Source: Dicyema japonicum (lineage: Eukaryota; Animalia; Dicyemida). Taken from it: 33,000 nucleotides of DNA. The DNA lies in contig RDEW01000049.1 of the NCBI GenBank assembly GCA_011109175.1, positions 114,157 through 147,156 on the forward strand, read 5' to 3'. The position numbers and the translations under genes were made by a program. The notes under the pieces were generated by a model. The model had not been told where the DNA came from and did no database searches. It was given only the letters and a program-made list of their open reading frames with translations. Below, one piece after another: positions 1 through 33,000 of this stretch. Within the stretch, counting starts at the first letter, position 1. Every line of letters starts with the position of its first letter.

Positions 1-38
1 GACACTAACTTGACTTTAAAAAATGTTTCTTTCTTTGC

Positions 39-112
39 GATGGCAACACCCCGAAGGGATAACGATACTCCCATTCGCTAATGGTCGAAACATTGCTGCG
101 GCGTTCACATGT
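39..112 (+). mobile_element. CRE-like non-LTR retrotransposon, restriction-like endonuclease (RLE) fragment
   Basis: With one frameshift it reads DG-HPEGITILPFANGRNIAAAFTC, resembling the CRE RLE motif DGKRPDG.T.FPF..GR...WD.TC. It abuts the next element directly. Confidence 0.55.
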
Positions 113-540
113 TAAAAAATACTCTCCAACAAATTTGGCTGGAATCCAGTTTATGACACCGAAGATCATAAAACTAGACTTGTTCCACAAAGTTCAGCTG
201 TAAAAAAACAGGAACTACTTGGCCCACGAGAAATCGAGAAATGCATTATTTAAGAGATGTAGCACTATACCTATCAGTTTAGAATTACTGGAATCCAGAA
301 GGAAGCTTTTCGGACACGTGCGAGGATGGAATTAACATCCCCACCTAACAAATCTATGGAAACATACTATGTTAGTCAAGAAGGCCGCTATCGTCGAAGA
401 CCAAATACAACAATGCCAACAGTTTTACAAAAAAAAAACCTCGTTAAAATTAAAAGAAATTTAAAAACTGCCGACGACCTTGACACTATGGTCCACATAG
501 ATGGTGGCAACTCTGAAATAATGATTATATGTTGTGTTGT
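113..540 (+). mobile_element. 3' end of an RTE/RTEX-like LINE ORF, degenerate
   Basis: KLDLFHKVQL...NALFKRCSTIPIS...RRKLFGHV, frameshift, then RMELTSPPNKSM...YRRRPNTTMPTVL...LKTADDL. This matches the post-RT C-terminus pattern LFGHILR...RGRPxTT. Confidence 0.7.
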
Positions 541-547
541 TTAATTA

Positions 548-1750
548 AATCGTGTCCTTTGAGATCGCATGAACGAGTTTCCTCAACTCTCCCCGATCCG
601 TTGCAATTTGGAGTAGCCTTGATATAAGAATTCCCGTAACCTCCTCCACCGTGGATAGCTACCAAGTCTTTGGTCGGCCAGGTCTTCTCTTCCGAGTGAT
701 ATTGCTCAGCATATTGGTTCTTTCAAGGGAATCAAAGCGGACAACATGCCCAAAAAACGCCATTCTGTGTTTTACGATTCTTCCTTTAGCGAAATGTCCG
801 TTTCCACCCGTTTGAGTACATCAATGTTTTTAATTTAAAAGTCCAATGGATTCTTACTAACCTCCTTCAGTACCACAGCTCAAAAGCATCAATTTTTCGT
901 CTATCCACTTTTTTCAGTATCCATGATTCTCCGCGGAATAGGAAAACCGGTAACACGATTACATTAACCAGTCTGCATTTGGTCCTTAATCAAACATCTT
1001 TGCTTTTCCAAATTCTATTCATTCTCTGGAAGGTGTCTCGTCCCATGGCAATTCGCCTCTTGATTTCCAAACCTCCGTCATTATTCCGATTAATTAGACT
1101 TCCCAGAAAGACAAAATTATCTCAAATCTCTTGTTTCTTATTCCCAATTTTTTAGTTCCATTATTAGCAGTAGTCATAATTTCGGTCTTCTTGATATTTA
1201 GCAATAAACCAAAGACGACGCTCTATTCTCTGAATCTTAGAATCAACTCCCTGAGGCCATCCTCTGTTTCAGCCAGTAAGGTTGCATCGTCAGCATAGCG
1301 CAAATTATTGATGTTGCTTCATCCAATTTTAATCCCTTTTTTGATACAGTATCCAATTTAGTCATGATCATTTCGGCATAAATATTGAATAGGATGGGAG
1401 ATAATAAGCATCCTTGTCTTACTCCTTTACTAATTTTAAACCAATCGGTATCTCCATACACTGTTCTAACAGTAGCTTCTTGATCCTTATAAAGAGATTT
1501 GATAAGCAATATCAGATGGGCATCGAATCCAAATTCTTTTAAAGCGGACCACAGCTTGTCATGTATAACGGAATCAAAAGCTTTCCGATAGTCAATGAAG
1601 CACATGTATACACTCTTTTGGGATTCATGGGCTTTCTCCATAATCCACCGGACATTTGCTATATGGTCACGTGTGCCTCGTCCCTTCCTGAATCTTGCTT
1701 GGACATCCGGTAGAATCATTTCGGCATTTGGCATTAGACGATGTTGTATA
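548..1750 (-). mobile_element. 5'-truncated RTE (BovB-like) LINE, RT and C-terminus, frameshifted
   Basis: ORF 1243..1776 has QARFRKGRGTRDHI, CFIDYRKAFDSV and GVRQGCLLSPILFN. After a frameshift comes NLRYADD (YADD at 1286-1297), then LNIKKT, FLGS, EIKRRIAM, ESW..KKVDRRKIDAFELW, FFGHV and RPGRP, with stops. Confidence 0.92.
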
Positions 1751-2036
1751 ATGTCACAGGCGCAACAGTTTATCAAATTAATGATTTAATTTATCAAATT
1801 AATATATATAATTTGACCAAACTAGTGCAACAACAACAACAACGATTTATTGACAAAAGAGTTAAGGAGATTTCTGGAGGGTATTACATCTGAGTCCTAC
1901 CATAAGGCTTGGACTCCACACCTGGACCCTTCCTCCTTTTTTTTATTATTAATCTTTTTCGGAACGTTTCTCCCAGCTTTTTAATCTTTATTCTCCCAGC
2001 TTTATGTATGTGTCCTGGACCTTTGATCTCCTCCTG

Positions 2037-2250
2037 AAACCATTGATCCGATCCTCCACAATCTTGCTAATCGGTTCCAGGAGCTTGTTTTCGTCCTCGT
2101 TTAGACAGTCTTTCAGTTTCATTTTTAAGGAGAGCTTAATTGCAAACCATTGATCCGATCCTCCACAATCTTGCTAATCGGTTCCAGGAGCTTGTTTTCG
2201 TCCTCGTTTAGACAGTCTATCAGTTTCTTTTTTAAGGAGAGCTCAATTGC
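2037..2250. repeat. Tandem duplication, 107 bp unit (2037-2143 / 2144-2250)
   Basis: Direct comparison; 3 mismatches. Confidence 0.95.
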
Positions 2251-2342
2251 AGCTCTTCTAGTCTTCTCTAGGAGGGATAAGATCTTGTCCCTTTTCGGAG
2301 AGAAGAACCACCCCTCGCACCCATAAAGTAGGCTAGGGAGAA

Positions 2343-2660
2343 TAACTCCCTTGAAGATAAACAGGTAAGTGTCACGGCTAACGTGTAACTTCCGTGTACA
2401 TAAGAGCGACTAAAAGGCTCTCTTTCTCCTCCCCTTTATGTTGTCCATGTAATCTCCTGCGTGTCCATAGTCGACCCCCAGGTAGCGCAGAATGTGTGGA
2501 TTAACTCCCTTGAAGATAAACAGGTAAGTGTCACGGCTAACGTGTAACTTCCGTGTACATAAGAGCGACTGAAAGGCTCTCTTTCTCCTCCCCTTTATGT
2601 TGTCCATGTAATCTCCTGCGTGTCCATAGTCGACCCCCAGGTAGCGCAGACTGTGTGGAT
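2343..2660. repeat. Tandem duplication, 159 bp unit (2343-2501 / 2502-2660)
   Basis: Direct comparison; 2 mismatches. It duplicates the RYLGV region of the LINE. Confidence 0.95.
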
Positions 2661-3857
2661 TGTTTACTCACAGTGTGTTTTCTTGTTTCAGGTGCTTTTT
2701 CTAACTGCTTATTCGGAGTGCGCAAGATTTTTCAGCAGAGACTTTTAGCCCTCTCAAGTTGCACCAATGCTCAATCTGGTCGACATACTCCCGGATTCTT
2801 CCTTCGGATATAGAAGATTTTAGAGATGTGTCCACAACGATTACGTCATCTGCATAAATAAGAAGACTAGTATTAATATTCCTCGGACGTGGAAAACTCG
2901 CCATAAATATATTAAACAAAATAGGGCTCAATACTGAACCTTGAGGGACTCCTCTTTTGAATGATATTGCATCAGATATATATCCACACACCTTCACAAA
3001 AAATTGTTTTTCCTGAAGATAATTTCTTAGCCAAACAAATAGGTATCTTGGAACATATGCTGATACAAGCTGCTTTAACAACGCTTCATGGCATACACTC
3101 TCGAATGTTTTAGAGATATCAAGACATAATAAGTTTATTTTTCTCTTAGAATCCTTTGCTTTCATGATCTCAGAATTCAGTAGAAAGAAACAGTCTGTAC
3201 AGCCTCTTCCGGGACGAAAACCACACTGCTCCGGAATCAGAAAGTTGTTTTCTTCTATATGTCTACTTAGCCTTTTGAAAATGATACGTTCAATCACTTT
3301 CGCGAAAGAACATATTAAGCTAATTGGTCTGTAGCTTGTCGGATCTCTCTTTGGCTTCCCTGGTTTTGGAATCATCCTCGCAACAGCTATCTTCCATATT
3401 AAAGGCAAGTGGCCAAGTCGCAAACACCCATCATAAAAACATCGCAGATAGTCAAACAAACTATCCGGACACTCTTTGATAAGTTTCATTGATATGTGGC
3501 CATATCCTGGAGCATTGACCTTGCATTCCCTGATAGCTGTCATCACTTCAAAGATGCTGACAGAGCTAACAGCAATAGGTAGTTCTCGTCGGAGTGTTCA
3601 AATATATCGGCAGACACCTTTTTTTGTCATCAGGGATCAAACTCCACGGATCCACACCCTGAATTTTTTGGAGCTGATCCCTGAATATCGAAGGTGTTTC
3701 CTTCGTTATGCATACTCCCCCGTCTGGTTTATCCAGTATAATTTTTTCTGGACCCGACTTCGGACACATTATCTTCTGACAGCATTTCCAAAAAAAGGGA
3801 TTCTTCATATCAATTTTTGCAGCCTCAGCCTTTCCCCTCATAGTTGTTAAAATAACG

Positions 3858-4180
3858 ATAGAAGAACTCGATAACCTTAAAAAAAACTTACTCCCAGTTA
3901 GAAACGAGGTACTTACTAAGTAACCGAATAAGACCATTTCCGAGAAGGACTGGACTGACTTTATTGAGAATGCCTACACAAATCTATTGAGTCTACGGAC
4001 GACTTTATTTTTCGATCATTTGTACCATTCTGTTTCACATAAGGACTTAATTTCGTAAATTTTTAAGATCCCCACCACGTGACGCTCCCGTGTGATAAAG
4101 AAGGCGACAAATATACAAGAGAATGCAACCCTTCTGACAATGAAGTAAATGAGTTGGTGAAAAGATCCTCTCAGGTTGTC
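3858..4180 (+). pseudogene. Unidentified host-gene fragment with candidate micro-introns
   Basis: Removing GT..AG 3909-3932 (24 nt) removes an in-frame stop (…PVRNE|TISEKDWTDFIEN…). A second candidate intron lies at 4022-4043 (22 nt). Frameshifts remain and the family is not recognised. Confidence 0.3.
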
Positions 4181-5029
4181 ATTGTCGCTTGAACTCATCG
4201 ATAATAATGATAATATAAAAGACCTTGAAAATTGTATTGAGAATCTGGAGTTTTTGTTAAATGACGATTAGTTTTTTGATGTTTTTGTTAGATTTGCTTC
4301 CATATTTAAATTCGGTGATTTTTAGTCCGGTAGTTAAGTTTTTTACCGATGTTGCCTGACAGCCAGGGACATTCTACGGAGACATTGATTTGGAGTTGTC
4401 TCAGAGGGGGAAACGATTAGATGGACTATAAGAAGGACAGTAATGGAGGGTACACTGCTTTCTATTTGTCAGGTTGCAACGCTTTTGCATGACAGTTCCA
4501 TTGTGAATGTGCTTTTGCATGACAGTTCCATCGTCTTCTCTGGGAGCGTCCAAACTGACTGGCATCACTAGTTCAATTACCATGTAAAGTGACATACTCA
4601 CTAAACCAACTTAATATGAGGTCATTTAAAACAAACACTTGATAAACTCAGGGTTATGATAATTTCAACATTTCCAGAACTTTTGGGCAATCTCACTAAC
4701 ACGATCCACCAACGTACGAAATACGTTTGGAATACAATTTTGAGACAGACATTGTTTAAGAGCAAAATCAGTTCAGAGATATAAATAAACAACATTTAGA
4801 TCACTATACAGAAATTATTTCACCAGCATCTAATATGGAAACAATTTAGATTGTCTTGTTACGTAATAAATCGTTTTTGTTCCAAAAAATTATTGTGATA
4901 AAAAGTCTAGAAAAGTAGCTATTCGTTTATGAAGTTAATTTTTATTTTTTTATCATATTTTTAATTTATGTTTTTAAAACATTCAATATTTTTTCCTAGT
5001 GATTGAAGTTGCTTGCGTTTTTTGTATTC

Positions 5030-5370: not shown

Positions 5371-5709
5371 CATTATTACGACACTCAAGAAGCTATCAAT
5401 CGCATGCATTTGAATAGCTGAGACAGAAAATTCTGTATTTGACCATAAACTGTCAGGTTGGGGGTCTTCTTTATTATAAGAGAGTTTATTGTATTCAATA
5501 GTCTGCTGAGGACCATAAAATCAACGAAAATGTTTAATAGTGTTCCTTTTCGAACTACAAACAGACGATTGATCTTTTTGAGAAGCTGTGTGCTGAGAAT
5601 CAGTATTATTGGCTCATCACTAGGGCGATTTTTATGAAGTCAAAAATTCATATGTTCTTTAAAATTCTGTCTCACGGAACAAGTGCCTTTCTGTGTCTCA
5701 CGAAAACTC

Positions 5710-6195
5710 ACTTTTGTCTATGTGGGTGGATGTGAAAAAGCTTACGATTCAGTTGATCATTTTTACCTTGTCGAGTGCCTACACAGTCTGTGTATGCCTG
5801 TGTGGTTCATCAACTTTGTAGTGGCTGTGATGAATAGGTGGAGTATTTATCTGAACTATAATGGGCACCGGATAAGCGAGGTAAAACTCAAGAGGGGGAT
5901 CCTTCACGGGAATAGCTGCTCTTTGTTCTCTGTTTGGAGCCATAGAGTCGCCGTCCCAATGACCGGTTTGAACAAATACCAGTTCATTGTGAGGGGGTTT
6001 GTTTCAGTACAGATCACCTTCACTTTATCGATGACCTGAAGATGTATGCTCTACTCCATAAGGGTCTGTGCCAGGGAAATCTTTGAGAGTATACGACTAG
6101 ATTTGAATTATTCAAAATCTGCGACTAACACGAAAGTATGTAGCGAGATAGTAAGAGTCCTAGAAGAACACGAAGGATATAAGTATCTGGGTGTT
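5710..6195 (+). mobile_element. R4/Dong-like non-LTR reverse transcriptase fragment, frameshifted
   Basis: KAYDSVDH, LKRGILHGNS, HLHFIDDLK (FIDD at 6024-6035), LDLNYSKSATN and EGYKYLGV occur in RT motif order across three frames. Confidence 0.85.
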
Positions 6196-6899: not shown

Positions 6900-7764
6900 T
6901 TAATAATTTAAATTGTTACGTCTTAATGAATTGTAACGTGTTCGCCGTCGTTTAATTATAAAAAAGATTCCACAGATAATTGTAATTCCACCAATTACAC
7001 AAATTTCCATTATATATTTGTTATCTAAAGTTATATATTTATGTACTTTTTTGAATAATAATAGTTGTTGAAGTATATTTTTTGCTTTTTGATGTGAATA
7101 GTGCCGTTGACTGTAATTTGAGATTTGTTCTTATATCATTTTGACATTCAAGTTCTAAATAATGATTAATTTAAAATAACTATTTCCGGTAAAACTTGTT
7201 CTATTATCTATAAATGATAATTTTATTTTCAAATCACTTATAATGACTTTATCATATGGAGGGAAATATAGAACACTTTTGCTACATTTATAATAACTGT
7301 TATTTGTAAATTTCTCAGGAAAATCAAATAATCTATCAGGGTCTAAGTTAATAAACAAATTTCTTTACATTTATGGTTGTATGCTAATAATTCTAAACGA
7401 ACAGATAATAAACGTTCTGTAGTAAAAGATTTGCTAGTAAATATCAATTTTATGTCAATTTTTCTTCCATAAAAACATAACTTCACCATATTCAGTATTT
7501 TTTAATTCAAATTTTGCATCATTTAAATTTTCATGTAAAATCTTTTTTAATATAATGAGATTACAGTATTATTGATATTGTATGAAACATCAATTCTTCC
7601 TTTAAATAAAACTAAACGCTAGTATCCTCTCTAGCAACCCACATTGGCACTCCATTATCAATTATTTTTGAAATTATAATTTCACTCATCATTGATTTAT
7701 AAATGATTATACATGAAAATACTGGTAATATTATTAATTATTATAAACCTATTAATTGGAACAT
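6900..7764 (-). pseudogene. Type I membrane protein pseudogene (signal-like N-terminus, TM helix, short tail)
   Basis: ATG at 7764; removing the 27-nt intron 7722-7748 gives MFQLIVFSCIIIY; a 26-nt intron lies at 7155-7180. C-terminus EICVIGGITIICGIFFIIKRRRTRYNSL...* (stop 6900-6902). Several internal frameshifts and stops. Confidence 0.55.
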
Positions 7765-7964
7765 TCACACAACGTTATTGTCACAATTAATCACAATCTA
7801 GCAACCCACATTGGCACTCCATTATCAATTATTTTTGAAATTATAATTTCACTCATCATTGATTTATAAATGATTATACGTGAAAATACTGGTAATATTA
7901 TTAATTATTATAAACCTATTAATTGGAACATTCACACAACATTATTGTCACAATTAATCACAAT
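7631..7964. repeat. Tandem duplication, 167 bp unit (7631-7797 / 7798-7964)
   Basis: Direct comparison; 2 mismatches. Confidence 0.95.
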
Positions 7965-8077
7965 TTTTATTAAAATAAAATCAAATAAATTTAATAAAAT
8001 ATTATTTAATTATTAACATAATTAGTTAATGAGATCCCTCAAAGTCAAACATAGAGTTATATTACAAGTAGATTCTT

Positions 8078-8361
8078 CAAATTGTAAACAAACGATATTA
8101 TCAATTCAATAAAATTAAGTTAAACAGTGATAAAATCTGACCAAGAAAATTGTTGATTCTTCACAGAAGACAGAGATCTGGGATTTTTATTTAAATTTAT
8201 GTTTTCTAATAATTATAATCAAATTGTAAACAAACGATATTATCAATTCAATAAAATTAAGTTAAACAGTGATAAAATCTGACCAAGAAAATTGTTGATT
8301 CTTCACAGAAGACAGAGATCTGGGATTTTTATTTAAATTTATGTTTTCTAATAATTATAAT
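8078..8361. repeat. Tandem duplication, 142 bp unit (8078-8219 / 8220-8361)
   Basis: Direct comparison; no mismatch seen. Confidence 0.95.
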
Positions 8362-10079
8362 TTTAATTTTTAAATATCAATTAAATCATTCTTTTTTGTG
8401 GAAGGTGATGTTTGTTATGTGACAAATCAATTCCTGACTGAGGAGATAGTCGACCTGGAAAAGGAAGAAATTTAAGTCAGTCCTCTTAATCATTTACTCA
8501 GGCAGTCTGCCAGAACAAACAAGTATTGATAAGCTCCGAAACAATGAGAAACCGTTAGCTAGAGCGAAGGCATTGTTATAGGTTTGCTACTCTTGGGTCA
8601 TTCAGGCACTATAATATGACAGATGATATATTAATTTGGAATATTTTGTGTGGTAATGATATTGCTAAAATGTGAGATAATTTCTATTCACTATTGTAGT
8701 CTTGATGGCGCATGTAATTTGGTTTATCAAAAAAAGACAAAATCAATTTTTATATTAGCGAAAATAATGCCATTAATCAGAATGAATATCATTGGCTTAA
8801 AATACGTTTCACAAATACAAATTTAACAACAAAAAATATTTATTTTATCTCAAAAGGCTAATTCTAATTAAAATGTTCTCTATCCAATTCGTGATTACAG
8901 CTTTCAAGTCTAATTTCAATAGCTGAAGATTGTCGATATTATTCAAAAAAATGAGGTAGGAAAAAATCTTTATGTTGCATACAAAGAAATCAATTGAAAA
9001 GATGTCCTACAAATATCATTTATTGAAAAATCGTGGACTCGACAACTGTAAACTGTTTCAAACATGCAAAGTTGAGTATTAGGACATCAAAGTTTATTAG
9101 GCAGATCGAGTAGCCTCTCACGATTGCAACAGATCAACTGGAGATGCCGTCGAGTCTCACGTTCGTCGAGGATAACTCAAATGTAACTGTAAACTCAATC
9201 TTATCCTCAATCTAATCAACCATTTTAACACACCTAATACGATTTCTTCTCATTAGTCCCAGTTAGATTGGAAACATTAACTATTAATTTGGTCCTTGTG
9301 CATAACTGTCATATTGTTCAGACTTTTTTTCAACACCTCTGATTCAAGTCCGTTGTTTAATTCCTTTATTTTTTAGAACCAAAAGTATTAGAAGGTAGGA
9401 TCTACCATGGTAGACAATAAATTATGAGATCAGCCAGTAGATGTTACATGTTAGTTTTTGAGTTAAATAAAATTGGTTTGTTTTGAAAAATAAAAAAAAC
9501 TAATTAATTAAAAATTGTATAATTGATAATGATGCAATATACAAAGGTATCCACTATATAATATTTTGGATAGTCTGAAGTACTGGGCAGTAGAGCAAAA
9601 TTATCAAATTTATTAAATTGAACCAGAAAATAGCTACGAAATTACAGATTGAATATATATTTCCCGCCGACTTGAATTAATTGAATATTTTTTTGAGTTA
9701 ACATTTCGACAATAATTAAATTTATTACAAAAACGTCTTATACACTAATGTTTTGAGCTCAACTCTTAGGACAAAATTTTGAGAAATCGACGTTGTAATA
9801 ATTTTGATGATTGTACTCTTGTGTTAAAAATGATAAGAACAAAACATTGATTGTACTTATCATGAATTTGCGTCAATTTAAAGTCGATCCCATACATGCT
9901 TCTAATATCATCCTCTAGTAATGTTACTTAAGTTATTCGGCTACCAAGTGGATGGGTTCACTTCAGTTATTAATATGATCTAATCTGGTATATTTTCTGC
10001 GGGAATTAATGGCTAGATAGAACCGAGGAGACATTCATACCTTTTTTAATTCATTGAGTCACAAATGTTTATTTACTTT

Positions 10080-11960
10080 CCTCTTGTCTTTGATGGACTT
10101 CTGCGTAATTTTGATAAGCATATCATTTTACGTTTGAAATCCTAGAAACAGGATATTCTTAATTTCTGCTATTAAATCTTTTTGCTACAACGAACAGTAT
10201 CGAAGATTCTATTTATGAATTAATAATATCTGTAGTAATTCTCACTTGGCTTCTCAGAGCGGATAATTCATCATGATTCTTATATTAGAAGCCCTTCTTC
10301 ACTATGTTCAGAACGTTTTGTAGTAGTAAATTTTAAATTCGCTGTCCGCCTATTTCGGCTTGTCGTTCTACAGACAAGATTGATATTCAAATAGATATTC
10401 TCAAGTCATTAGTTGCTTTATAGCACAAATAGCCAGATGATGTGTTTTCTGAAAAGTTATTCGGGTGTAACTATCATAAAGGTGGGTGTTACTCACAGAA
10501 TCGCTCTACGACTGTGATGGTTGGAAAATGGAATTGATTATATCTCCCAAACAAATTGTTAATAAAACAATAAACTCCTTGTTATTTCTTATGACTGAGG
10601 TTGCTACTACTTTCAGAGAAAGAACTCAAAACACTAATAAGTAGCTGGAAATAACCACACATAGAAGTAACTGTGGCACTCCAAAAATATCTGTACTCGA
10701 CCAATATGATCAAGTCAATTCATGCAAACAACTACACAAGACGCAAATAAAAAGCTATAAAACGAAAATGCCACAAAAAATATCATTAAGTGAATATTAT
10801 CAATTAGTATAGTCACTTTCACTCGGGAGAGACTATTAACGGGACAATCCATCAGCCCCAGAAAATCATTGAGTTTCTCATTCCTCATAGCTTTCTCAGA
10901 TCTGTCAACAGAAGAGCAGACAAAAGTCATCAATAACTGAACAAATCTAAGTATTTCCACTGACGCAGAATTTCTAGTAAGAATAAGAACACCCTAACTT
11001 CGTCATCCCACGTCGACAGACATACTCAAAATATATTTGGTTCGACTGAGATAAAAACTTCAAAAACAGTTAATAAGTTCTTCTCGACTGATATAGTCCA
11101 TTTAATTCAGAAAATCAGACACACGTTTGAATTTTTCCCACAACTCCAATGCACGTGGGTCAACCGACAGATCGAATAGAACAATTCATAAGTTTTACTA
11201 CAGTTCATGGCGTTATTATTGTATTCCATCATGTTCTCAATACTAATATATTCTTCGAGTAATATTTATCTAGCGTACTCCATTATCAGAGCTTCCACTA
11301 CCACCATGTCCGCAATAATCCACTGTTTCGCATTCTTAGCTCAGCAATTACGATCTTATTCTCAATTCGGCTCCTTAAATCACACTTCTATGAAATAATC
11401 AATCGTTGTATACAGCTTTCCTTTCTGCTGATGCTTGCTGAACCTGCAGAGAATCGCAAGTCATCTTCCCAATCCTTTCAGTATCCTCATCAATCTTCCT
11501 TTTCAGGTCTTCCATCATAGAAAGCACTATCAGTTCTTCACGTTCTTTCAGCCTCTCCTTCTCACCATTAATTTCCTCAACTCTCATTTGGAAGTACACC
11601 ATTAGTTCATCCCACTGAGTGTCTCAATATTCCACAGAAATAAGTTAGCATATTCAATAGTTTGACTTAACAATTGCCGGTTTTCATTCTACTTTAAATC
11701 AGAAGTCGATTTAATTTGGCGTATTTTCTTAGTCCCTCTGTATTCTCGTACTTTCATGCATAATAATTGAAAACCTGTCATAATATCTTATTGATATTCT
11801 AATAATATTCTGAAATTTCATCAAAGGCTTTTCTGCTACTCACATTCTCGGAGCACTCATATACAAGTTCCTCCAGCTGTCATATTTTTTCAGTATATGT
11901 TAGTATTTTAATATCTTGAGGGTTTCTTCTACCATTTTTAGAGTTTCGGGTTTCAAGGTC
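10080..11960 (-). mobile_element. Possible highly decayed Ty3/Gypsy gag-pol remnant
   Basis: Weak motifs in the expected order: gag-like (KAFDEI...YFCGI), protease-like (VVVEALI/DNG), RNase H-like (LFG..., ATNDLR) and pre-integrase (LLQNVLNIVKKG...QKDLIAEI). No catalytic motif is intact and no LTR was found. Confidence 0.35.
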
Positions 11961-12259
11961 TCGCACGTGTATTTAACTGTTAAGCATTTGTTGTGAATTT
12001 TTTGGAGATATAACTATAGTTAAAATAATAGACTCACTCGTGGAGGATTAGGTTCATGTATGCTAATGTGGTCGCTTCCATTCCTGCCTTAGTGAGTGAG
12101 CACGTAATTAGTCCAGTCTAAAAAAAGGAGTGGTTTGTTAGCGACACAAACCGACCATGCTGCTTACATTATTATTAATATTATTAACCAAAGAACAGCA
12201 ATAGTTAATTTAATTACTAAATTAATTAAGTAATCTCGAAAGCCTCAATCAGAATTCTC

Positions 12260-14585: not shown

Positions 14586-14592
14586 ATGTCGC

Positions 14593-18411: not shown

Positions 18412-18511
18412 CCCATCCAAAGTGGACCCCGCAGACATTATTTGCGTTGCTTATAACGATCACAACAACTGGAGAAGCCACCGGGTCTCACGTACGTAGT
18501 GACTTTTTACT

Positions 18512-20930: not shown

Positions 20931-21044
20931 ATGGTTAAATTAGTTCGTCGTTCTTATAAAGATATCTATTTGTCATTCGGATTTATGTGCAAAGATAAAT
21001 ATAAACAACCTCAATGTCTAATTTGCATAGAAATCTTGGCAAAT
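20931..21044 (+). mobile_element. hAT (Buster/ZBED-like) transposase N-terminus with BED finger, cut by N at 21045
   Basis: MVKLVRRSYKDIYLSFGFMCKDKYKQPQCLICIEILAN matches R.Y...YL.FGF....PQC.IC.E.LAN. Confidence 0.85.
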
Positions 21045-22419: not shown

Positions 22420-22735
22420 TTAGAAAAGAAAGAAGTACCGTAGCATTGGGAATCAGTTCGCCTTCCAGCTGATCTCCATTTAGACGTATAACATCTAGTC
22501 CCTAGTAGAACAAAGTTTTTCAAACGACTTGCAGGACTGAGGAAGCGAGACCCTAGAATAACACTATGGTTTTTCCTCAAATTAGTTTTATTGTCCCAAA
22601 CAATAAGTTTTTACGTTACTCAATAATTCTCTTATTCTTCAGCTGGGCCAATGTCGAGATAACTTTTATCCATAAAAGTGGGAGACAGCGGATCAGATTA
22701 AAAAACGACCATAAATGCACACTCTGGAAAAGTCA
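22420..22735 (+). pseudogene. Possible condensin NCAPH (barren) remnant
   Basis: HWESVRLPADLHLD..L, HYGFSSN*FYCP and VEITFIHK...KCTLWK appear in the same order as NCAPH TLP.D.., YDYNN.ND.NFCP and IEIHYAK...K..MW; weak. Confidence 0.3.
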
Positions 22736-22899
22736 ATTCTTCTAAACGGTGCAGTGACTAGGTGTTATTCAATATATACTATTATGTATTCTCATCAGTT
22801 TCCGCAGAGATTTAATATTTTGATTCTTTTGAATTTTCATTAATTTCTGAATTTTGTTTTTGAATTTGATATAATTATAAATAGTACTGTTGTGAAATT

Positions 22900-23200
22900 A
22901 TAGTTGATACCAATAATCTATAAGGTTAACAGAAATGAGCAAAATTTGCAGAATTTAAAGGCGTGCTTATTTGGTTTTGAATGCTGTTCACGGATAGAGT
23001 AAATTTTGATATTAATTAGGAAATTAAGTTTTTACGTTATGTACGTTTCATTTGTAAAAGTTTCATAAAAATGTTGTTCAAGATTTATAAATAATATTCC
23101 AGAAACTGTACTTTGATGAAAAATGTATACGTTGCCTAATAATATTATAAACTGAGAAATTGTATTTAAGTGAATTATGTTGGCATTTGTTGACTTTTAC
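22900..23200 (+). mobile_element. hAT transposase remnant
   Basis: TEMSK..., FLRYVRFI...MLF and NYVGIC are in hAT order (DMS, YVRF, CVGICTDG); heavily decayed. Confidence 0.4.
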
Positions 23201-23414
23201 GTTTACAATTAGAGTTAGTGAATGTTCAAATATCTATGAATTTGAGTTAGTTTATAAATTCGAGATTATTTAATTATTACGTTAATTTTAAAATTATCTA
23301 ATATTTTCATAATTTTAATAATTTATTTTAAATTATCATAGATCACCAAATTATTTTAATAAAAACATTAGCAACAAATCAGGTTTTTCTGCATTAACAT
23401 GGAATTTCTTGTCT

Positions 23415-23830
23415 ATTTCAATTTGTGGACGTGACTCTTGTGCCGATTGGTTTTTGCTGTGAGTATGTTGATTTTTGGACAGTTTTTTATGGGGATATTT
23501 GTTTTCAAGTATATGTTTTTCTTAACAAGTTTCTTGACTTCAAAAAGGAAGATGGTCATCCCATCGAATCTATTTGCGTCCGCCAATACCCGTAAAAAGT
23601 ACGGCGAGAAAATATCGAAACTGCTCAAAAAGGAAGATGGTCATTCCATCGAATCTATTTGCGTCCGCCAATACCCGTAAAAAGTACGGCGAGAAAATAT
23701 CGAAACTGCTGGAAAATGTTGACACGAATATGTAACTTGGACTGCATTGGAAGAATATTTCGATCAGAGTTAGTCAGGCTGTTGTGATCGTACTTGGAAA
23801 TCATCCAAGGATGCTCAAATGAACTTTTAA
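23415..23830 (+). pseudogene. Unidentified gene fragment with two candidate micro-introns
   Basis: GT..AG at 23459-23482 (24 nt) and 23509-23529 (21 nt) splice into FQFVDVTLVPIGFCFFYGDICFQFLDFKKEDGHPIESICVRQYP*; family not established. Confidence 0.3.
23541..23710. repeat. Tandem duplication, 85 bp unit
   Basis: 23541-23625 / 23626-23710; 1 mismatch. Confidence 0.95.
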
Positions 23831-24597
23831 CAAAGAAATAGAAAAATTGAAAAAAAACTAGTAGAGATTCCGACTCTTGATTAAGTCTTCAAACTTGACA
23901 AGGTTCACTGACCCTCTTAAAAGAGAACGCAACAGAACCATATCAAAATAAATAGAAGAGTGAAAGAATCGCCCGGCATATTTGGATAACTTGGCAAGTG
24001 AATGTTTGATGTGGTTAAACAATTATCCCGCAATATCAGTTCTTGTAAATGACGGAAAGGATGATATTACTACATCATTAAATACTTCATCTAAGGGCTA
24101 CTTTCTACTTTTTGGCTCCATCAGTTCTCAAAAGGTCTCATCAGATCCATTTAAATCATAAGACGTCAATCCAAAAAGGATCTCTCTTTTCACCCACATC
24201 AGAATACTTTACCCGGATGTATATAATCAAACGTTCGATTGGATGATAATTTATTGAAAGATTTAAGCAAGTGAAACACCTGCTTCTCAATCAAAGGGAG
24301 ATATAATATTCCAAATCCACAAATATTTTGATGATGTTTGGAGGAATCCTATTTATTTACCATGGAGTAATGATAAACTTAAATATATGGTTTATAATAT
24401 TCATTATTGAAGAAAACAAAAAGAAACGTCGTGACCATAACTGTTGTGTTATATGTCTATCAAACTCTAACGCATCCAACTTGCATATTGACCTACACTG
24501 GCATCATGCTTAATTAAATAATTACTACAGACTCTCGACTTTTATATTTACTCTGAAACCCCATTTAACAAATAGAAAGCATTAAACTATTTATGCA

Positions 24598-25300
24598 CGT
24601 TGTATCATCAGAATAAACACATTTGTTAATCTATAATCAAAAAAGTAGATAACCTTCTGTCGTTCCCTCTCCCAAATCATTACTAATTTTGGAGTTAATC
24701 CGTTTTTTTCGTGCCATCTTCTTGGCTCGATTTTTGCAAATAACATCTACAATGATGTAAAAATAAACCTGCGAACAATTGCTTTGATATTCCCACAATC
24801 TCCCTTCGACCTATATTTTAATTAACAACAAACGTCCACTGTGAAGATAATCTATCTTTCACCATTAACTGTATCCAATCCTACAATACTTACTCATTGG
24901 ATTTTTTATGTCCAGGGGGTCCTATCTCTGAAATTACTATCCTTCCCCNCGTTGTATCATCAGAATAAACACATTTGTTAATCTATAATCAAAAAAGTAG
25001 ATAACCTTCTGTCGTTCCCTCTCCCAAAACATAACTAGATTTGGGGTTAATCCGTTTTTCTGGTGCCATTTTCTTAGCTCGATTTTTACGAATAACATCT
25101 ACAATGATGTGTAAACAAACCTTCGAATGATGGATTTGATATTCCCACAATCTCCGTACCACCTATATTTTAATCAACAACAGACGTCCACTGTTCAGAT
25201 ACTCTATCTTTTCACCAATAAGAGAATCCAATCCTAAAACCCTAACTTTTTTAGATCTTCTATGTCCAGTGGGTCCTCTCTCTGGGATCACTATCCTTCC
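24598..25300. repeat. Diverged ~350 bp duplication across N at 24949
   Basis: 24598-24946 / 24950-25300; the first ~78 bp are identical and the remainder is roughly 15% diverged. Confidence 0.9.
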
Positions 25301-26010
25301 TCGAATTCCCTGATTAGACAATACCTAAAATATAAAAAACGGACAACCTCATTTATTCCACGGAATCTCTCTACCATTTCATCATAGTTTTCTAATTTCG
25401 TGAGTTTGATCATTGAATCATTCACTTTACGTCTTCTTTGTTTTTTATTATATTTTGGCTAAAATGAGCACAAATAAACTCTAATATTTTTCATATCACT
25501 CATCTTTATGTCAGTCATGACTTGTGCGTCTTTACAAGAAACACTACAGTTAGTTAATTTAATACATTTTCTTATTGGGAATATTCCGAACAGTTGAATG
25601 TTCATTAACATCTGAGTGAATTGGCTTATCACGAGACATTGAACTTTTCATTATCTTTGGTATAACCAATCTATCATCTGGACTTCCGACATTCCTTATA
25701 GGACTCACTAATACAACATAAATATGAATGGAACCTCTGGGGACAATAGAGTCATCCTCGATATTTTCCACTATCGTCTCTCTTCCAATATTATCATCCA
25801 TAGTCTCCACCAGCATAGTATTCGCCCCAGTATTATCTTCTATAATCTCCTCTAATAGGGTACCTTTCCTAAAATTCTTCTCTGTGTATCTTTCATTTCT
25901 TTGGTAATTTATTTTTTCCAAATATGCAGACTTTCTAGGAATTAAAACATCTTGTAGAGAAGACATCGAAGGTGATGGTATCCTAATATCCCCACGACTT
26001 TCGATTTTGT
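24600..26010 (-). pseudogene. Collagen (Gly-X-Y) gene remnant
   Basis: GIR-GRI..ER-GPT-GHR..GLD..GEK near 25210-25310. In ORF 25559..26026 every third codon is often GGN or one change from it (GDI, VPR-GSI, RNV-GSP-DDR). Short GT..AG candidates are interspersed. Confidence 0.55.
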
Positions 26011-26386
26011 TAGAAAATAAATTCAAAAATTGGATCTAAATATTATAAATAGGAATACAAAAGGAGGATCGTTATTTCGGGGATCTATTATTTTATTAAA
26101 AGTTTCATCACTGTCGACAGGGATACTGCAGTAATTGCCGTAATGTTTATTAACAAGTTGTTGTTTATCATCAGTAATACCTGTAAATGTAAATAATATT
26201 AGTTACTGTCAAGACGTATCAGTTTGTGTGTCCTAGCTAACCTTCCATTTCTATATTTTTTAACACGCTCACTGTCTCTCATCACAACAGAAAATAATGT
26301 CTGCCTAATTTTATTTATTTTATTAATTATTTTTATTTATTTATTTGACATTAATCAATTATTTTTATTTATTTATTTGACATTCT

Positions 26387-26490
26387 TTAATCATGTGTGG
26401 TGATGTTGAACCTAACCATGGACCAGTTTCATTTCAGCCAAAGTTGAAGATACTCCAGTTGAGCATAAACGAACTTTCCAAAAAAATGTG
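26387..26490 (+). mobile_element. 2A-like motif followed by the start of a LINE APE endonuclease
   Basis: LIMCGDVEPNHGP (26387-26425), then in frame VSFQPKLKILQLSINELSKK, like APE motif I (L.ILQ.N.NGL..K). Confidence 0.6.
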
Positions 26491-26510
26491 TTGATTTACA
26501 CACATTTTTT

Positions 26511-27677
26511 GGCTTGAAACAGTGCAAACTTCGGACCTTTCAAGATGGCCTTGGCCTCAAATCTTTTGCCGAAATTTCGCTCCTTGCCTTACTTTTTCGC
26601 AATCGTTGTGTGGACGTTTTTTGGCACTCACCAGAAAGAGTTAAGATTACCTCGGATTGAAATTCTTAAGGTGCTATTCAGTTCAAACTCAAAGTGATTT
26701 TTTGTCTCCTGTGAGAGCATCAGGCTTCATAATAAATTTGTCCGACAAAGATATACTAAAACATGTATTTACTTGGTTCGTTTCTTGAAATCCGCAATTG
26801 CTTCCTACACACCAAATTGGCATCAGGCTTCATAATAAATTTGTTAGACAAAGATATACTAAAACATCTATTTACTTGGTTCGTTTCTTGTAATCTGCAA
26901 TTGCTTCCTACACACTAAATTGTTTATTAAATCTCCTAGCCTTCTAGAAGACAAAGAAATCTTGGATACGGATATTTACTACCCTAGCGATTGGTTCGGA
27001 CAGCAGAGTTGTCTTCGAAGATAATGTTGTGTGTTCTCTTTAGAGACTAGTTGCTTGGAGCACTCCTATTTGACCTGACTGTGGATGATGTCGCATGCAA
27101 AGTGCTTTCTCTATTAAACGTATGGTATATGGATGAAGTGGAGGCCCTTATGACTCCGTCTTGATAGACATCTATGTCATTAACAACTCTAAGGAGACTT
27201 TGATTATCAACATCTCTATATGCGCCCAAGATTTAGTTTTCGTAGCCGGAGCTTTAGAGAACAGTTTACGAGATAAAGGATCGGGAAGTGGGTGAATTTT
27301 AATTCCTTAAGATTTGCTTTGGTGACGACAGAAAGCTCTTTTCTCGAAAAACTCTCTGCTACACTCTATATCAGAGAAACGCAAAAAAATTTAAGGTTGA
27401 ATCGACGATGCTTAGGATGTCCTATGCTAAGAATCCTTGATTCACACATGGGTTCTTCCTGCTGAAAAATTGTCTTTCTTACTCTTTGTTCTGGGATACT
27501 CGTCATCATTTAATCACAGGGACATCCTAAACACCATCAACTCAAATCCTTAGTGGAGGGAATTTTTTTATTTAGCTCAACGATCTAGGCTTGATACAGT
27601 GCAATCCCCGGACCTTTCAAGATGGTCTAGGCCTCAAATATTTGGCCGAAATTTTGCTCCTTGCATTTCTTTTTTCG
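26511..27677. repeat. Dispersed ~89 bp direct repeat (26511-26599 and 27588-27677)
   Basis: GGCTTGA.ACAGTGCAA...GGACCTTTCAAGATGG... is shared at about 85-90% identity. Confidence 0.85.
26717..26922. repeat. Tandem duplication, 103 bp unit
   Basis: 26717-26819 / 26820-26922; 6 mismatches. Confidence 0.95.
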
Positions 27678-27847
27678 TGTGCTTCATGTGTTTGCCTTTC
27701 GTCGAGATTTTACTCAACACTTTAAGATCTTTTCTTGAGAGTGTATCTCTAACTAGTCACGTAGCCGCTTTATTAGGGATAGATTTGTAGTGGGTGAACA
27801 ATTGAGAAATGATAATATGAGATTTCGTGTATTAATCTCAAACTTGG

Positions 27848-28070
27848 AATGCTGACAGTTACATGACAGATGGAATAATCATCTTTTTCGCGGCTGGGAA
27901 GCACCTAGTATGGAATGTCACGTGTATGAACAACTTCGCTTCAAATAACCTCCTTTAGAGTGTTGCCAATAACAGTTGAGCTCTGGGAAGGTCGAAATAT
28001 TGCTGGAAGTATGCTAACTTCTTGGTGAGCATAATGAAAGCTATAATATCTATAGCACCGCATGGGTAGG
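27848..28070 (+). mobile_element. CRE-like RLE domain fragment
   Basis: ADSYMTDGIIIFFAAGKHLVWNVTCMNNFASNNL...KYANF, compared with DGKRPDG.T.FP...G..LVWD.TC.DT.A.S...KY. Confidence 0.7.
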
Positions 28071-28129
28071 ACACGCATTTTATTTTAGAGTAAGGTCACG
28101 CAGTTATTTTAACTAAACATGGAAAAGTA

Positions 28130-28330
28130 GATAAAGCACGTTCATGACTTTTTCTTTTTGTTGTGTGTGAGCCCTTATAAACAATCTGGTACCGAGTGAG
28201 GTATCACTGATGATGACGTCCTTTGTCAAAACAAGAACCACCATATGTGGGTTGGACTCTCTGTCGGGATGGACAGCACCAAGATTTGAACATTTGGATT
28301 TTGTCCGAGATTTGAACACTGCGCAATACT
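28130..28330 (-). pseudogene. Possible ribosomal protein eL34 (RPL34) remnant
   Basis: GAVHP, RVQPTYGGSC (YGGS at 28234-28245) and FIRAH...EKVMNVL are collinear with RPL34 AVRP, VSRAYGGS and IKRAF...KIVVKVL; frameshifted. Confidence 0.4.
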
Positions 28331-28399
28331 CATGGTCAGAATAATATTTACTATCAGCATCACACGTGATCTTCAGAGTTTTTCAATTTTGGGCTGGAC

Positions 28400-28583
28400 G
28401 AGGTTCAAACCGGATTTTTTGTTTCCTAAATCTCCCGAGTCCTTAACGTAGTCAATGCTCACTAGAAAAAAGGAAGATGAAGTTTCCATAAGAGGTTCAA
28501 ACCGGACTTTATGTTTCCTAAATCTCCCGAATCCTTAACCTAGTCAATGTTCAATAGAAAAAAGGAAGATGAAGTTTCCATAA
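28400..28583. repeat. Tandem duplication, 92 bp unit
   Basis: 28400-28491 / 28492-28583; 6 mismatches. Confidence 0.95.
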
Positions 28584-29260
28584 CTCATGAAGCTAATTGT
28601 ACATTTCGTTTAATACAATAGAATCAACTTATTAGAATATCTGCAACTTACGAATCTTTCCAAAGTCATACACAAGCCCACTTAGAACCAAGATGTTGGT
28701 ACGTCAATACGTAACAGTTATAAAAATTCACAAAAAATGATCAATAAAGAATTGAGTGGTTTTATTTGGTGCCATCCGATCTTGAGACATGTGAACCACA
28801 TGACGCTGAGTTAACACCATCAGGACAAGGAAGATAAAACAGAATCTTTCACCCTTATTATCATTCGTGAATTGAATATATATAAATATCATTATTGTTT
28901 GGTATTTCGCAACAAAAGCACTTACATTCATGTTGGATCGTCCATGTTCAAGTTTATCAGTGTTTTGAGAGTAAAAGAATCAAACTCGGAACGTTGGAGA
29001 AATTGATATTTTTCAAATTGCTCATTTATTCACTCGTTATGGATGCATGTTTCCTCTCTCAGATTCAATGTGGAAATTTCAAAGTGTGACAAATTCTTGG
29101 ACCACTCACCCAGACATATATATCATATCTATCCCACTCATTCAGAAAGACTTATGGGAGCGTATAGTAATCGTGGTAGGCATTTGGAAGTAGTTATCCA
29201 TATGGTTAGTTTTAGTTAAGTAATTAACTAATATTTAACAAGTCAGATGGATAAATTCTT

Positions 29261-29548
29261 TTAAAGAATCATCATTAACACAACTCTCCATTAATATCTA
29301 ATAACACTTACCCTCTCACTTAACATTCATGGTTTATGCATCTTACTTCCCAGTTGAAAATCGTCGCACATACTCATTTTCCTTAGTTGGAAAGACTGCC
29401 CATATTAAAGAATCATCATTAACACAACTCTCCATTAATATTTAATGACACTTACCCTCTCAATTACCATTCATGGTTTATGCATCTTACTTCCCAGTTG
29501 AAAATCGTGGCACATAATCATTTTCCTTAGTTGGAAAGACTGCCCATA
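29261..29548. repeat. Tandem duplication, 144 bp unit
   Basis: 29261-29404 / 29405-29548; 6 mismatches. Confidence 0.95.
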
Positions 29549-29626
29549 TAACAATAATAAACATTCCATAAAAAAGCGATTCAGCCATTTAAATAAATTA
29601 AATACATTAAAATCAAACAATAACAA

Positions 29627-29968
29627 CAATCCTTTAATAACTTCAATTGGACGAAATTCGATACACTTTTTACTAATATATATGTATCCAATATCTAGGA
29701 ATCGTCTTTATGTGACAGGGAAGCCTCTTCCAATATCAACTTGGGAGAGGCCACTATGATAGAGATTACCTTCTGTCTCATTACTTCTAACACATCTTCA
29801 TCATCTCGCCTTCGCTCGGGAAAGAGTCTTTCCAGCTCCGTGATTCCTAATGTCTCAGAAAACCACACGTCTGTCCCAGTCAGCACATAGCTGCACGTGC
29901 CCATCGTCCTGGGCTAGCCATTCAACTACAAATATAAACTCTAGCAAACTTGATAATCAATGGGATCA
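29627..29968 (-). pseudogene. RTCB: RTCB (tRNA-splicing ligase) unprocessed pseudogene, 3' part
   Basis: PIDYQ|LNG*P..TMGTCSYVLTGT...ETLG, alternate frame HGAGKTLSRAKAR, then EDVL..ISIIVASPKLILEEA and final ISKKCIEFRPIEVIKG. RtcB has MGTCSYVLTGT/HGAGRALSRAK/VASPKLVMEEA/ISKKAIKLRPIAVIKG. 24-nt intron at 29926-29949. Confidence 0.92.
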
Positions 29969-29972
29969 TATA

Positions 29973-30011
29973 AGTCTCTTTAGCCTGACACCTAACCACT
30001 ACGCCACCCGG
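29973..30011 (-). other. tRNA-like 5' half (A-box), possibly a SINE head
   Basis: CCGGGTGGCGTAGTGGTTAGGTGTCAGGCT contains an A-box-like TGGCGTAGTGG; no B-box or cloverleaf follows. Confidence 0.3.
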
Positions 30012-30315
30012 ATAAAATTGATAAAATTATCTTATTTAAATGAATAAAACATGATAAAAATTACTTTTATCTTATTTTAATAAAATATAAAATAAAAAAA
30101 ATTCTAGCGTTACAGCACATAAATAGCCCTTATATTACTACACTTTATGAAGTGCCATATTAGCTATAGCTCCTTCTAAGCATAACACAATCTTAATGTT
30201 AAGTATAGAATAGTTATCATAACTAATCGATGAGAGAAAACCAAGGATTTTCATTTCTTTTTTCTTTTTGTTTTATAGAGACATTTTGTAGACGATCCGA
30301 GTCAGCTGGTAGAAT

Positions 30316-30685
30316 CACTAATGACGGCGTCACTCTTCAAGTCAAAGCTGACACAATAGGAATATCAATGTTTGACAGTGAATCAATTTCTTCGTGTTAA
30401 AGATATTACAATTAAAAATATGATCCCAAATATAAAAAGCCAATAACTCAAAATAAAAAAATAATTAAATCAAATATTACAACACTAATCAAATCATCTN
30501 CACTAATGACGGCGTCACTCGTCAAGTCAAAGCTGGCACAATAGGGATATCAATGTTTAACAGTGAATCAGTTTCTTCGTGTTAAAGATATTAAAATTAA
30601 ATATATGATCCCAAATATAAAAAGCCGATAACTCAAAATAAAAAAAATAATTAAATCAAATATCACAACACTAGTAAAATCATCT
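30316..30685. repeat. Tandem duplication, ~184 bp unit joined by N at 30500
   Basis: 30316-30499 / 30501-30685; about a dozen differences. Confidence 0.95.
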
Positions 30686-30719
30686 TATATTTATTAGCAG
30701 AAGTTCGAGTAAACACCAC

Positions 30720-31244
30720 CAATTCCTCCCACCCTTCGCCTAATCACCCAATGAAAGTCTACAAAAACAATCGCATCTTGGTCCGCGACGGCAAAAACGA
30801 TCTTCCAACATCGGCTGATTGAAATTCGTTTTGAAGACCTCATCATTCTTGTTAAGTAAAAAGCCGACGTGACAGTATTTTAGCAAAAATTTCATATTCC
30901 CCATAATTTGATTGTTCGCATTAATCATACCAATAAGTCATTACAACTCCTCCCTCCGTTTGTCCGTTAAACCGTGGATCCTCTTGAGCTTGCTTCTAAT
31001 ACCGCTCCTTTTCCTCTTTCTCTTTTTCAGCCTCCTCAATTCACGGATCCTCATCATTCATAAGCTACCTCATCATCCTAAGAACAGATGTCCATTAGCC
31101 ACATATAGCTAATTCAGTGGAAATATCCCCTCGGTTTTCATCTTCAATCATCCTTAACGTCGACTCCCTCTGGTCCTTAACGATATCTGACGTATTTCAA
31201 TCCTTCTCTCTAATTATTTCTTTTTCTCCAACTCCTGTAGACAT
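30720..31244 (-). pseudogene. Probable DNA polymerase alpha catalytic subunit (POLA1) 5' remnant
   Basis: VVMTYWYD*CE..YG.YEIFAKI (YWYD*CE at 30915-30935) resembles Pol1 FWLDYCE...LFGKV. It is preceded by an acidic DDEVAYE segment and an ATG at 31244. Confidence 0.5.
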
Positions 31245-31749
31245 TTCCTGTTTTCCCGTTGAATAAACACCGCTTTCAAAAGTGGAGACGGTACAAAAAT
31301 GCTTGTTTTATAATTTGAAACAATAATTTTCTCCACTACAAATAGAAAATGGAAAAGCTGTGGGATTGGAACATCTGGAGTGTGTTAACCTTTTCGTTAA
31401 TATAATAATCTTTCCGCAATGGACACCGTTGGAGCACTGAGACTTTGTTCCTACGATTATTTTTTAAAAATTCGCCAACCTAATCTCATCCCACTCAGAA
31501 AAACTCAAAGAGCTATGATAGCTAAGAATTCCAACGGTTTTCTTTTCAATCCCAAAGGGGATTATTCACACTGTTAGTGCTTCGACTTTCTAACTCTTAT
31601 TTTGTTTGTCGACTTTTGGAATGTCATATTCCAATATGGTTACACTAAAATAAACTTTACAATACTTAACTTTTTTTTTAATTTATTAAGCTAATTATAT
31701 TATTTTTTTAATTTATTAAATAAGTTAATACAGCGGCCCTTATTTACCA

Positions 31750-32450
31750 CCGTAACCGTATTGACAAGGGGTCACTTTTGATGGGGTGAACAGTGGCGTA
31801 GGTCATTCGGAGAGGGTTGATGCTTCTCCAATAGAATCTTGTAAGTACTAGCGGTTGGATTGTGTGGTCCGCCTGAGAGTGAGAGGCCTTACAATGCGAG
31901 TCGGGTTCCTCCTTCAAGCAACTTCGATTGTACAGTCCTTCTTAGGCGAAAAATCTCCGTTTCCCTAGTTGAACTCAAAATCTGAGTTGAACGGATGCAA
32001 AACGATGGGAGGTCTGTAAAGTGAGTTCCATCCATAAAGGCGCGGATGTTGTTCTTCATTTCAATCGAGAGAGACTGTTTCCCATTGCGATCTCGGGGGA
32101 GCCAAGTGCGAAAGTAGCAAAATAACACAGACGTACCCAGTCGTTTATAAAGTCGGAGTGGAGAACATCATCGATTGCTTTGGTTAAGGCTTCGGCAGCT
32201 AAGGGGTGTGCCGCTTTTGGGATCTTCACCGGGATACTCCTCAATGAACGGCGTTCATTGATAAGTTGAGTAGCGAATCTGGATCCAATTGGGAAAGGTC
32301 TTTTCCGGAGGTGCATACACTCGCGTGACCATTTGGAAACCCCCAGCCATTTCCAAGGTACGAGCGTCAGTGCCATATCCCAAGGGCGCGGATGGAGGCC
32401 TGAGAGAGCTTCAAACATCCGAAGTGAAAGAAGCCTCACATGGAGAACAA
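31750..32450 (-). mobile_element. CRE-like non-LTR element, region N-terminal to RT
   Basis: KIPKAAHPLAAEALTKAIDDVL...WVRL, SLSIEMKNNI, VQSKLLEGG..LAL and LLEKH.PSP follow the CRE pre-RT pattern; a degenerate CxxC..IRALG..LGNG finger lies upstream. Confidence 0.7.
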
Positions 32451-33000
32451 AAAATTCTGAACTTTCTCTACAAGGTTTTGAACTAAATCTTCAACAAGGT
32501 TCTGAACTACAGCGCTATGAACAGGTATTGCGTGAGGATTTGAAACTGTTGGATTTTTGGTTTAGAGGAGCTTCTTGGACCTAAGCAAACAAAAAAAAGA
32601 CGCACAGACAACTGCCATTCTTCTCAAAAGTGGATGATACCTAACTTGGGCATTACCCATGTATATGATTTCGGTTTATACATTTTGCGATAACCGTACC
32701 TCATACTTAATTTTCAAAAGAAGGAAGTCTGCAAAATTGTATTTGATCGATCATCGGGAAAGAGACAAACTAGCCACATAGAACCACATAGAGCCACGTG
32801 GCCAAAAATAAAATTATTAGCTAAATATTTTATGTAAAAACTGTGTATCCTTCGGCTTATTAACTAGATGGTTAATTAATATAGTTAGTCAACCTAACAT
32901 GATATAATAGTGAATTATTATTATTTAAGTCAAAGAAACACCGTCTACTGGATAAATACACGGATAAAGAAATTGCTCCCAGAACACTCGAGTCTATAAT

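Follow-up and report, generated by a model that had tools for sequence, protein, structure and literature searches.

Primate pericentromeric and subtelomeric duplication is covered by a two-step model, and LCR16a is an example of a core duplicon. In the interspersed segmental-duplication mosaics of primates, sequence is first copied from donor to acceptor loci and then from acceptor to acceptor, with core duplicons as recurrent parts (in part from PMC7419210). Here we compare with such mosaics a stretch of 33,000 bases from Dicyema japonicum (scaffold C322, positions 114157-147156; the window in the following), in which fragments of the genes for RtcB (RTCB), FRG1 and an RTEL1-like helicase lie between transposon pieces. 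Its closest analogue is an interspersed segmental-duplication mosaic, together with ordinary unprocessed pseudogenes. The window lies in a repeat-rich region of the genome and is probably a mosaic made of transposon fragments and low-copy duplicated blocks. A sequence-only reading of the same DNA had named nine genes and had proposed a process at this locus that repeatedly captures short pieces of genomic DNA.

The published D. japonicum genome has 67.5 Mb in 377 scaffolds, 48.9% repeats, 5,012 genes and a mean intron length of 38 bp, and was assembled with Platanus, SSPACE, SSPACE-LongRead, GapCloser and HaploMerger (PMC6736024); by text-term search, neither pseudogenes nor transposons are mentioned in the genome paper (PMC6736024). 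The assembly that was searched consists of 67,542,437 bases in 377 contigs. C-numbers are its scaffolds and L-numbers are stretches taken from them: L001 is C257:596000-599000 (the RtcB reference), L027 lies on C190 (RTEL1-like), L003 is the FRG1 reference and L004 covers C223:1.905 Mb. Exons were searched singly by reference, unspliced, and coordinates are window positions unless a scaffold is named. In DNA searches, at least 29,996 of the 33,000 window bases (at least 91%) have another copy in the genome. The gene fragments and the duplicated blocks that contain them are:

13003-13505, plus strand: FRG1 5' fragment with upstream DNA and the first coding exons, ending inside an exon
13506-13525, no strand: junction between FRG1 and RTEL1, about 11-30 nt of filler, no long homology
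13526-17014, plus strand: RTEL1-like fragment, about 1.4 kb of upstream DNA and the gene 5' half through the DEAD_2 region, introns kept
17003-17749, no strand: block common to C223:1903010-1903744, 93-95% identity
19542-32464, plus strand: segmental duplicate of C223:830064-844659, collinear, 91-95% identity, except for 21045-24341, which has no match there and is enclosed by scaffold joins
26964-29970, no strand: truncated RtcB-bearing repeat unit, fixed left end kept, right part (the 5' two thirds of RtcB) missing
29113-29968, minus strand: RtcB 3' fragment, made up of a coding remnant (29627-29968) and some 350 bp of source 3' flank

The RtcB fragment has 71-75% DNA identity to C257:596488-597216, and in a genome-wide hidden Markov model (HMM) search C257 is the only locus that covers the full RtcB profile. 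An open reading frame (ORF) of the fragment (29698-29913, minus strand) matches residues 406-479 of human RTCB (E=1.5e-10), and a 24-nt GT..AG intron between the DYQ and LTGQP codons is kept (29926-29949); the window copy carries indels and deletions. DNA searches with the C257 locus identify at least 16 further RtcB copies: at least nine start at L001 489 or a few bases from it, and at least ten end at L001 2614/2628. The upstream limit of the copies is the site of a later high-copy repeat insertion in C257. All aligned copies have three deletions of 10-12 nt in common when compared with C257, and all keep the intron; these deletions and the common breakpoints of at least 16 copies argue for a single origin. 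When a maximum-likelihood tree is constructed, the window copy groups with C223:841k and C135:234k at a support of 86/91, which is under the 95/80 threshold; this group is part of a young group of five copies with strong support, outside which C257 and the two C315 copies fall.

The only full-length locus, RtcB on C257 (L001, minus strand), itself appears damaged, with lesions near L001 1048, 937, ~1745 and ~1725. Compared with the copies it has one 1-nt and one 2-nt deletion and an in-frame TAG where the copies keep the conserved ATLG of the GNHY motif; another stop, a TAA, recurs in all copies. D. japonicum may be without an intact RtcB, C257 may be mis-assembled, or the stops may be spliced out.

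The RTEL1-like fragment aligns to C190 (L027 6796-3875) in five blocks with 74-85% DNA identity, one of which (L027 4777-5385) spans two introns. As the C190 helicase gene starts at L027 5329, the fragment consists of about 1.4 kb of upstream DNA and the gene's 5' half. One of its exons (15821-16033) has 77% amino-acid identity to a C190 exon whose DEAD_2 score is 35 bits. In the C190 gene, DEAD_2 and Helicase_C_2 both exceed the Pfam cut-offs, and there is a weak RING-like match at the C-terminus; source gene and window fragment probably both represent an RTEL1-like helicase, a name taken from domains and homology. The RTEL1 copies at C315 (about 4 kb), C29 (two copies), C79 and C223 have a common gap at L027 5397-5843. 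C29 is a 56-kb scaffold that contains a direct repeat with a period of about 13.2 kb, with one RTEL1 fragment in each unit (C29:16940-19227 and C29:30138-32418).

The FRG1 fragment has 87% DNA identity to C246:147939-148463 and 84% to C356, which carry the two FRG1 genes of the genome. A 26-nt intron is kept (13359-13384), and the exon has 67% amino-acid identity to the source exon. Part-copies on C223 and C157 start at the same position as the window copy (L003 340), and a shorter piece on C328 starts at L003 404. Searches of PDB sequences with the RTEL1 and FRG1 exons of the window returned nothing or a spurious RecA match, and the identity of these two pieces rests on DNA homology to HMM-validated loci. 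The two FRG1 genes (C246:148081-149600 and C356:235305-236828) look intact and share 97% identity over 1.5 kb, a sign that this gene was duplicated recently.

All three gene fragments of the window are truncated, with disabled coding capacity and no long ORFs. Introns and non-coding flanks are kept, which agrees with the earlier proposal that the confident fragments were copied as DNA, and the fragments are unprocessed (DNA-duplicated) pseudogene fragments. Processed pseudogenes, or retrocopies, are excluded because introns are kept; the RtcB unit also has no poly(A) at either end. The source loci of the three genes lie on four different scaffolds (C257, C190, C246 and C356): the parents are unlinked and scattered and not adjacent to each other. 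As pieces of these unlinked donors are joined end to end, with 11-30 nt of filler between FRG1 and RTEL1, the composite is not one old segmental duplication of neighbouring genes. The junction between FRG1 and RTEL1 is identical at C223:1.905 Mb (L004), and window positions 12977-14500, which include it, are 92.6% identical to C223:1904451-1905966; this argues that the two pieces were juxtaposed before the duplication that yielded the window copy.

In addition to the C223 blocks listed above, positions 17753-33000 are collinear with C135:19751-35100. The copies are 83-95% identical to each other and 71-80% identical to their source loci. The window resembles segmental-duplication mosaics: it has adjoining intron-bearing fragments from unlinked donors (C257, C190 and C246/C356), and it has blocks of at least 1 kb that are common to acceptor loci with identities above the donor level (13 kb at 91-95% with C223:830-845k; 92.6% with C223:1.905 Mb; 71-87% with the donors). 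The RtcB unit recurs in most Dicyema mosaics, like a core duplicon. Unlike in primates, the blocks are on a far smaller scale (0.5-15 kb in a 67.5-Mb genome) and have lower identities (71-95%). The fragments also resemble unprocessed pseudogenes, as they keep introns and non-coding flanks and are disabled by stops, frameshifts and truncation. Usual unprocessed pseudogenes, however, are isolated tandem duplicates, whereas here one gene (RtcB) has at least 16 copies that are spread in composite repeats. The same mixture of RtcB, RTEL1 and FRG1 scraps is present at C223:1903000-1921000, C315:465000-497000, C135:10000-35100 and C355:13000-23500; several of these loci lie at scaffold ends or on small scaffolds.

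The original copies were large: the RtcB copy comprised the whole gene, about 2.1 kb, and its flanks, and the RTEL1 copy at C315 has about 4 kb. Each of the three genes would have been copied once, as a large piece, and the short pieces in the window would be leftovers after truncation. We consider hierarchical segmental duplication the probable explanation, in which a few old DNA-level gene duplications were later spread inside low-copy repeat blocks. In a first step, a few old duplications copied RtcB, the RTEL1-like gene and FRG1, whole or in large part, with introns and flanks, and these copies were joined at new sites by end-joining; the common breakpoints, the kept introns and the filler junction show this step. 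In a second step, the composites were re-duplicated to many loci inside larger blocks, as shown by the collinear paralogues and by copies that resemble each other more than they resemble the source loci. In a third step, suggested by the comparison of copies, deletions and insertions of high-copy repeats would have shortened the copies and broken them up. The window has then probably inherited its scraps and not collected them: it would be a mosaic of duplication and decay, with no new DNA-capturing system. The proposed process of repeated capture of short pieces at this locus does not agree with a single origin of each gene and large original pieces, nor with the arrival of the pieces inside ready-made mosaic blocks of 13-15 kb that are also present at C223 and C135.

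A dedicated or lineage-specific capture process is very unlikely. It could act by reintegration of developmentally excised circular DNA, or the window could be a small-RNA trap locus that acquires gene pieces. Dicyemids do produce extrachromosomal circular DNA, and chromatin elimination has been reported for them (PMC6543705); the same scrap mixture at C223:1.90-1.92 Mb, C315:465-497k and C135:10-35k would fit such a process. However, each gene has one origin, and the long dicyemid circles that have been reported contain non-coding DNA and have a median of about 700 bp (PMC6543705), much smaller than the 2-15 kb blocks found here. Little support remains for reintegrated circles, as the ends of the copies are fixed, at at least ten loci each, and not circularly permuted. 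Amplification is also selective: of five further conserved genes, three show no extra copies, and RPL34 (Ribosomal_L34e) has one pseudogene copy (C68). The domain searches with DDRGK, Cnd2 and the B-family DNA polymerases gave no extra copies; those with polymerase domains cannot assign B-family loci to POLA1.

Several observations weigh against hierarchical segmental duplication. Both the left and the right end of the RtcB unit recur unchanged, each at ten loci or more and beside at least three different flanks, and such fixed ends look more like those of a discrete mobile element than like those of random segmental duplication. The assembly is at scaffold level without a chromosome map. Finally, there are about 16 scaffold joins in the 33 kb, and where the order of contigs is unsupported by a paralogue, as at 21045-24949, it comes from scaffolding.

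The left end of the RtcB unit is fixed at 26964-26967 and begins with GATATGGATATTG; three different left flanks are present among the loci examined, and the count of at least ten loci includes three older copies (C268, C1 and C246) that match from about 15 bp in. The right end finishes with AACCAACCTCTA, some 85 bp beyond the stretch homologous to C257, and is followed by one of three different flanks; at C112, C334 and C268 both ends are present 2.7-4.8 kb apart. These data, together with the existence of Helitron-type Rep genes in the genome, fit an explanation by non-autonomous mobile elements, which would have acquired a host gene in a single event (transduplication), spread by transposition afterwards and left truncated insertions in the window. 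The gene-bearing units would be such elements, most of all the RtcB unit of 4.3-4.8 kb. We regard this as possible and on balance unlikely. No inverted copy of the left end (a terminal inverted repeat, TIR) was found in any locus examined, there is no poly(A) and no long terminal repeat (LTR) at the unit ends, and at C112, the one copy inspected with both ends, there is no target-site duplication. Subsets of the copies have flanks in common, as nested segmental duplication predicts, and part of the unit is homologous to C257:592.6-593.3k, about 3 kb downstream of RtcB, which suggests that the unit is a copy of the RtcB neighbourhood. Capture by a Helitron was rejected: in either orientation the ends do not fit the 5'-TC and CTRR-3' of Helitrons, even though Helitron Rep genes exist in the genome.

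Like Pack-MULE or Helitron transduplications, the unit has fixed ends and carries an intron-bearing host gene at many loci. Unlike these elements, which typically contain several short exon fragments, it has one piece with a whole gene and flanks, and no TIRs, Helitron termini or target-site duplication were found among the few copies inspected. That the unit of 4.3-4.8 kb (other gene-bearing blocks may be alike) is a new non-autonomous mobile element without TIR, LTR, poly(A) or Helitron hallmarks, which transduplicated a whole host gene to at least 16 sites, possibly via the extrachromosomal DNA pathway of dicyemids, is a doubtful proposal. If it were true, the scrapyards of this genome would be deposits of an undescribed route of DNA-level mobilisation.

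The joins in the window are marked by seven single Ns and by eleven tandem duplications of 85-196 bp, each with exactly 2.0 copies. The duplications are:

2037-2251: exact two-copy duplication
2343-2661: exact two-copy duplication
7630-7964: exact two-copy duplication
8077-8361: exact two-copy duplication
17341-17510: exact two-copy duplication
19259-19648: exact two-copy duplication
23540-23710: exact two-copy duplication
26717-26922: exact two-copy duplication
28400-28583: exact two-copy duplication
29261-29549: exact two-copy duplication
30315-30685, no strand: exact two-copy duplication with an N at its midpoint (30500)

The paralogues hold one copy of each duplicated unit, and BLAST blocks break at the duplications. 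In many other loci examined, a single N is likewise the midpoint of a two-copy duplication. These duplications are unmerged contig overlaps from scaffolding or gap closing, not biology, and they are systematic in the assembly; exact two-copy duplications of 85-460 bp are also present in L004, L005, L006, L012, L018, L022, L024, L031, L034 and L035. The joins, and an assembly made with Platanus, SSPACE and GapCloser (PMC6736024), are what could be expected of a chimera in which short-read contigs of different repeat copies were wrongly stitched, and segment 21045-24949, which is bounded by two Ns and has no match in the C223 paralogue, may indeed be misplaced. As an explanation for the gene fragments, a chimera is highly improbable: the junction between FRG1 and RTEL1 and the truncation of RtcB lie inside contigs and recur in the C223 paralogues, C223:826-846k (L007 and L008) has no such joins, and overlapping contig ends fit a true adjacency. 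Their recurrence in paralogues that were assembled independently shows that the junctions are no chimeras of the assembly.

Three of the nine genes named from the sequence are real: fragments of RTCB, RTEL1 and FRG1 are present, as shown by DNA homology to C257, C190 and C246/C356 and, for RtcB, also by the match of its ORF to human RTCB. The other six are without support. Genome-wide HMM searches with DDRGK, Ribosomal_L34e, Cnd2, DNA_pol_B and DNA_pol_B_exo1 identify other loci only, none of them in the window or its paralogous blocks, and for collagen there is no Gly-X-Y run of at least five triplets in any frame of the window. POLA1, collagen, DDRGK1, RPL34 and NCAPH are thus unsupported by HMM searches, the Gly-X-Y test and ORF scans; the same genome search also missed the RtcB and RTEL1 pieces of the window itself, so these blanks are weak evidence against short decayed fragments. 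The suspected membrane protein was not identified either. In Pfam scans of 40 stop-to-stop ORFs of the window, reverse transcriptase is the only match, and for 30 stop-to-stop ORFs that lie beyond the transposon-rich first 7.8 kb no match rose above noise. In the ESM Atlas, the two longest ORFs that do not belong to transposons had no usable match and low recognition, and they are therefore probably not genes. Rfam and tRNA scans of the window were blank.

The interleaving with transposons described before is real, as shown by matches to RVT_1 and by several high-copy repeats. The transposons and other repeats of the window are:

7-4511, minus strand: two adjoining non-LTR retrotransposon fragments with RVT_1, dozens of genome copies, 90-97% identity
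4532-7797, no strand: 3.3-kb repeat with copies at C332:172266-175532 (97%) and C146:645966-648917 (94%)
9633-12243, no strand: moderately repeated block family, at least 8 loci, 69-90% identity
12175-12296, no strand: high-copy repeat of about 120 bp, after the 9633-12243 block
14593-15168, no strand: high-copy repeat that interrupts the RTEL1-like fragment
28036-28230, no strand: high-copy repeat of about 190 bp inside the RtcB unit, at least 25 copies, 72-75% identity
31766-32468, no strand: high-copy repeat of about 700 bp, at least 30 copies, 86-90% identity

The two reverse transcriptase (RT) ORFs of the retrotransposon fragments are at 1246-1785 and 2704-3597 (RVT_1, E=9e-22 and E=1e-36, respectively). 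An ORF of the 3.3-kb repeat (5638-6036) looks RT-like by eye, yet Pfam gave only noise and no RT match. The family of the 9633-12243 block has loci on C331, C246 (352-354k), C88, C68, C334, C164, C13 and C157, and the Pfam scans of window ORFs found no match in it. With its dense, nested transposon fragments in mixed orientation and little or no intact coding capacity, the window is like a transposon graveyard or a piRNA-cluster-like locus; unlike in the latter, its gene fragments are explained by duplication history alone.

Two further observations concern repeats outside the window. A repeat of about 3 kb brackets the window in inverted orientation (C322:111123-114076, L034 6967-9920, and C322:147251-150176, L035 95-3020; 85% identity) and is also present at C135:35.8-38.7k and C315:485-487.8k. 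Helitron_like_N domains at C179:630702-631217, C179:648205-648747, C257:146326-146745 and C201:799449-799676 lie in open frames with no internal stops, which suggests that Helitrons were recently active in the genome of D. japonicum.

Repeats make up about half of the small, gene-poor dicyemid genome, and part of this fraction consists of low-copy duplicated blocks with dead copies of a few housekeeping genes. Such dead copies can mislead gene counts and BUSCO-type estimates of completeness, and the two-copy duplications of the assembly will inflate repeat calls and break gene models. There is no evidence for a new capture system, and the mosaic raises the testable question of how blocks of 2-15 kb move in this genome.

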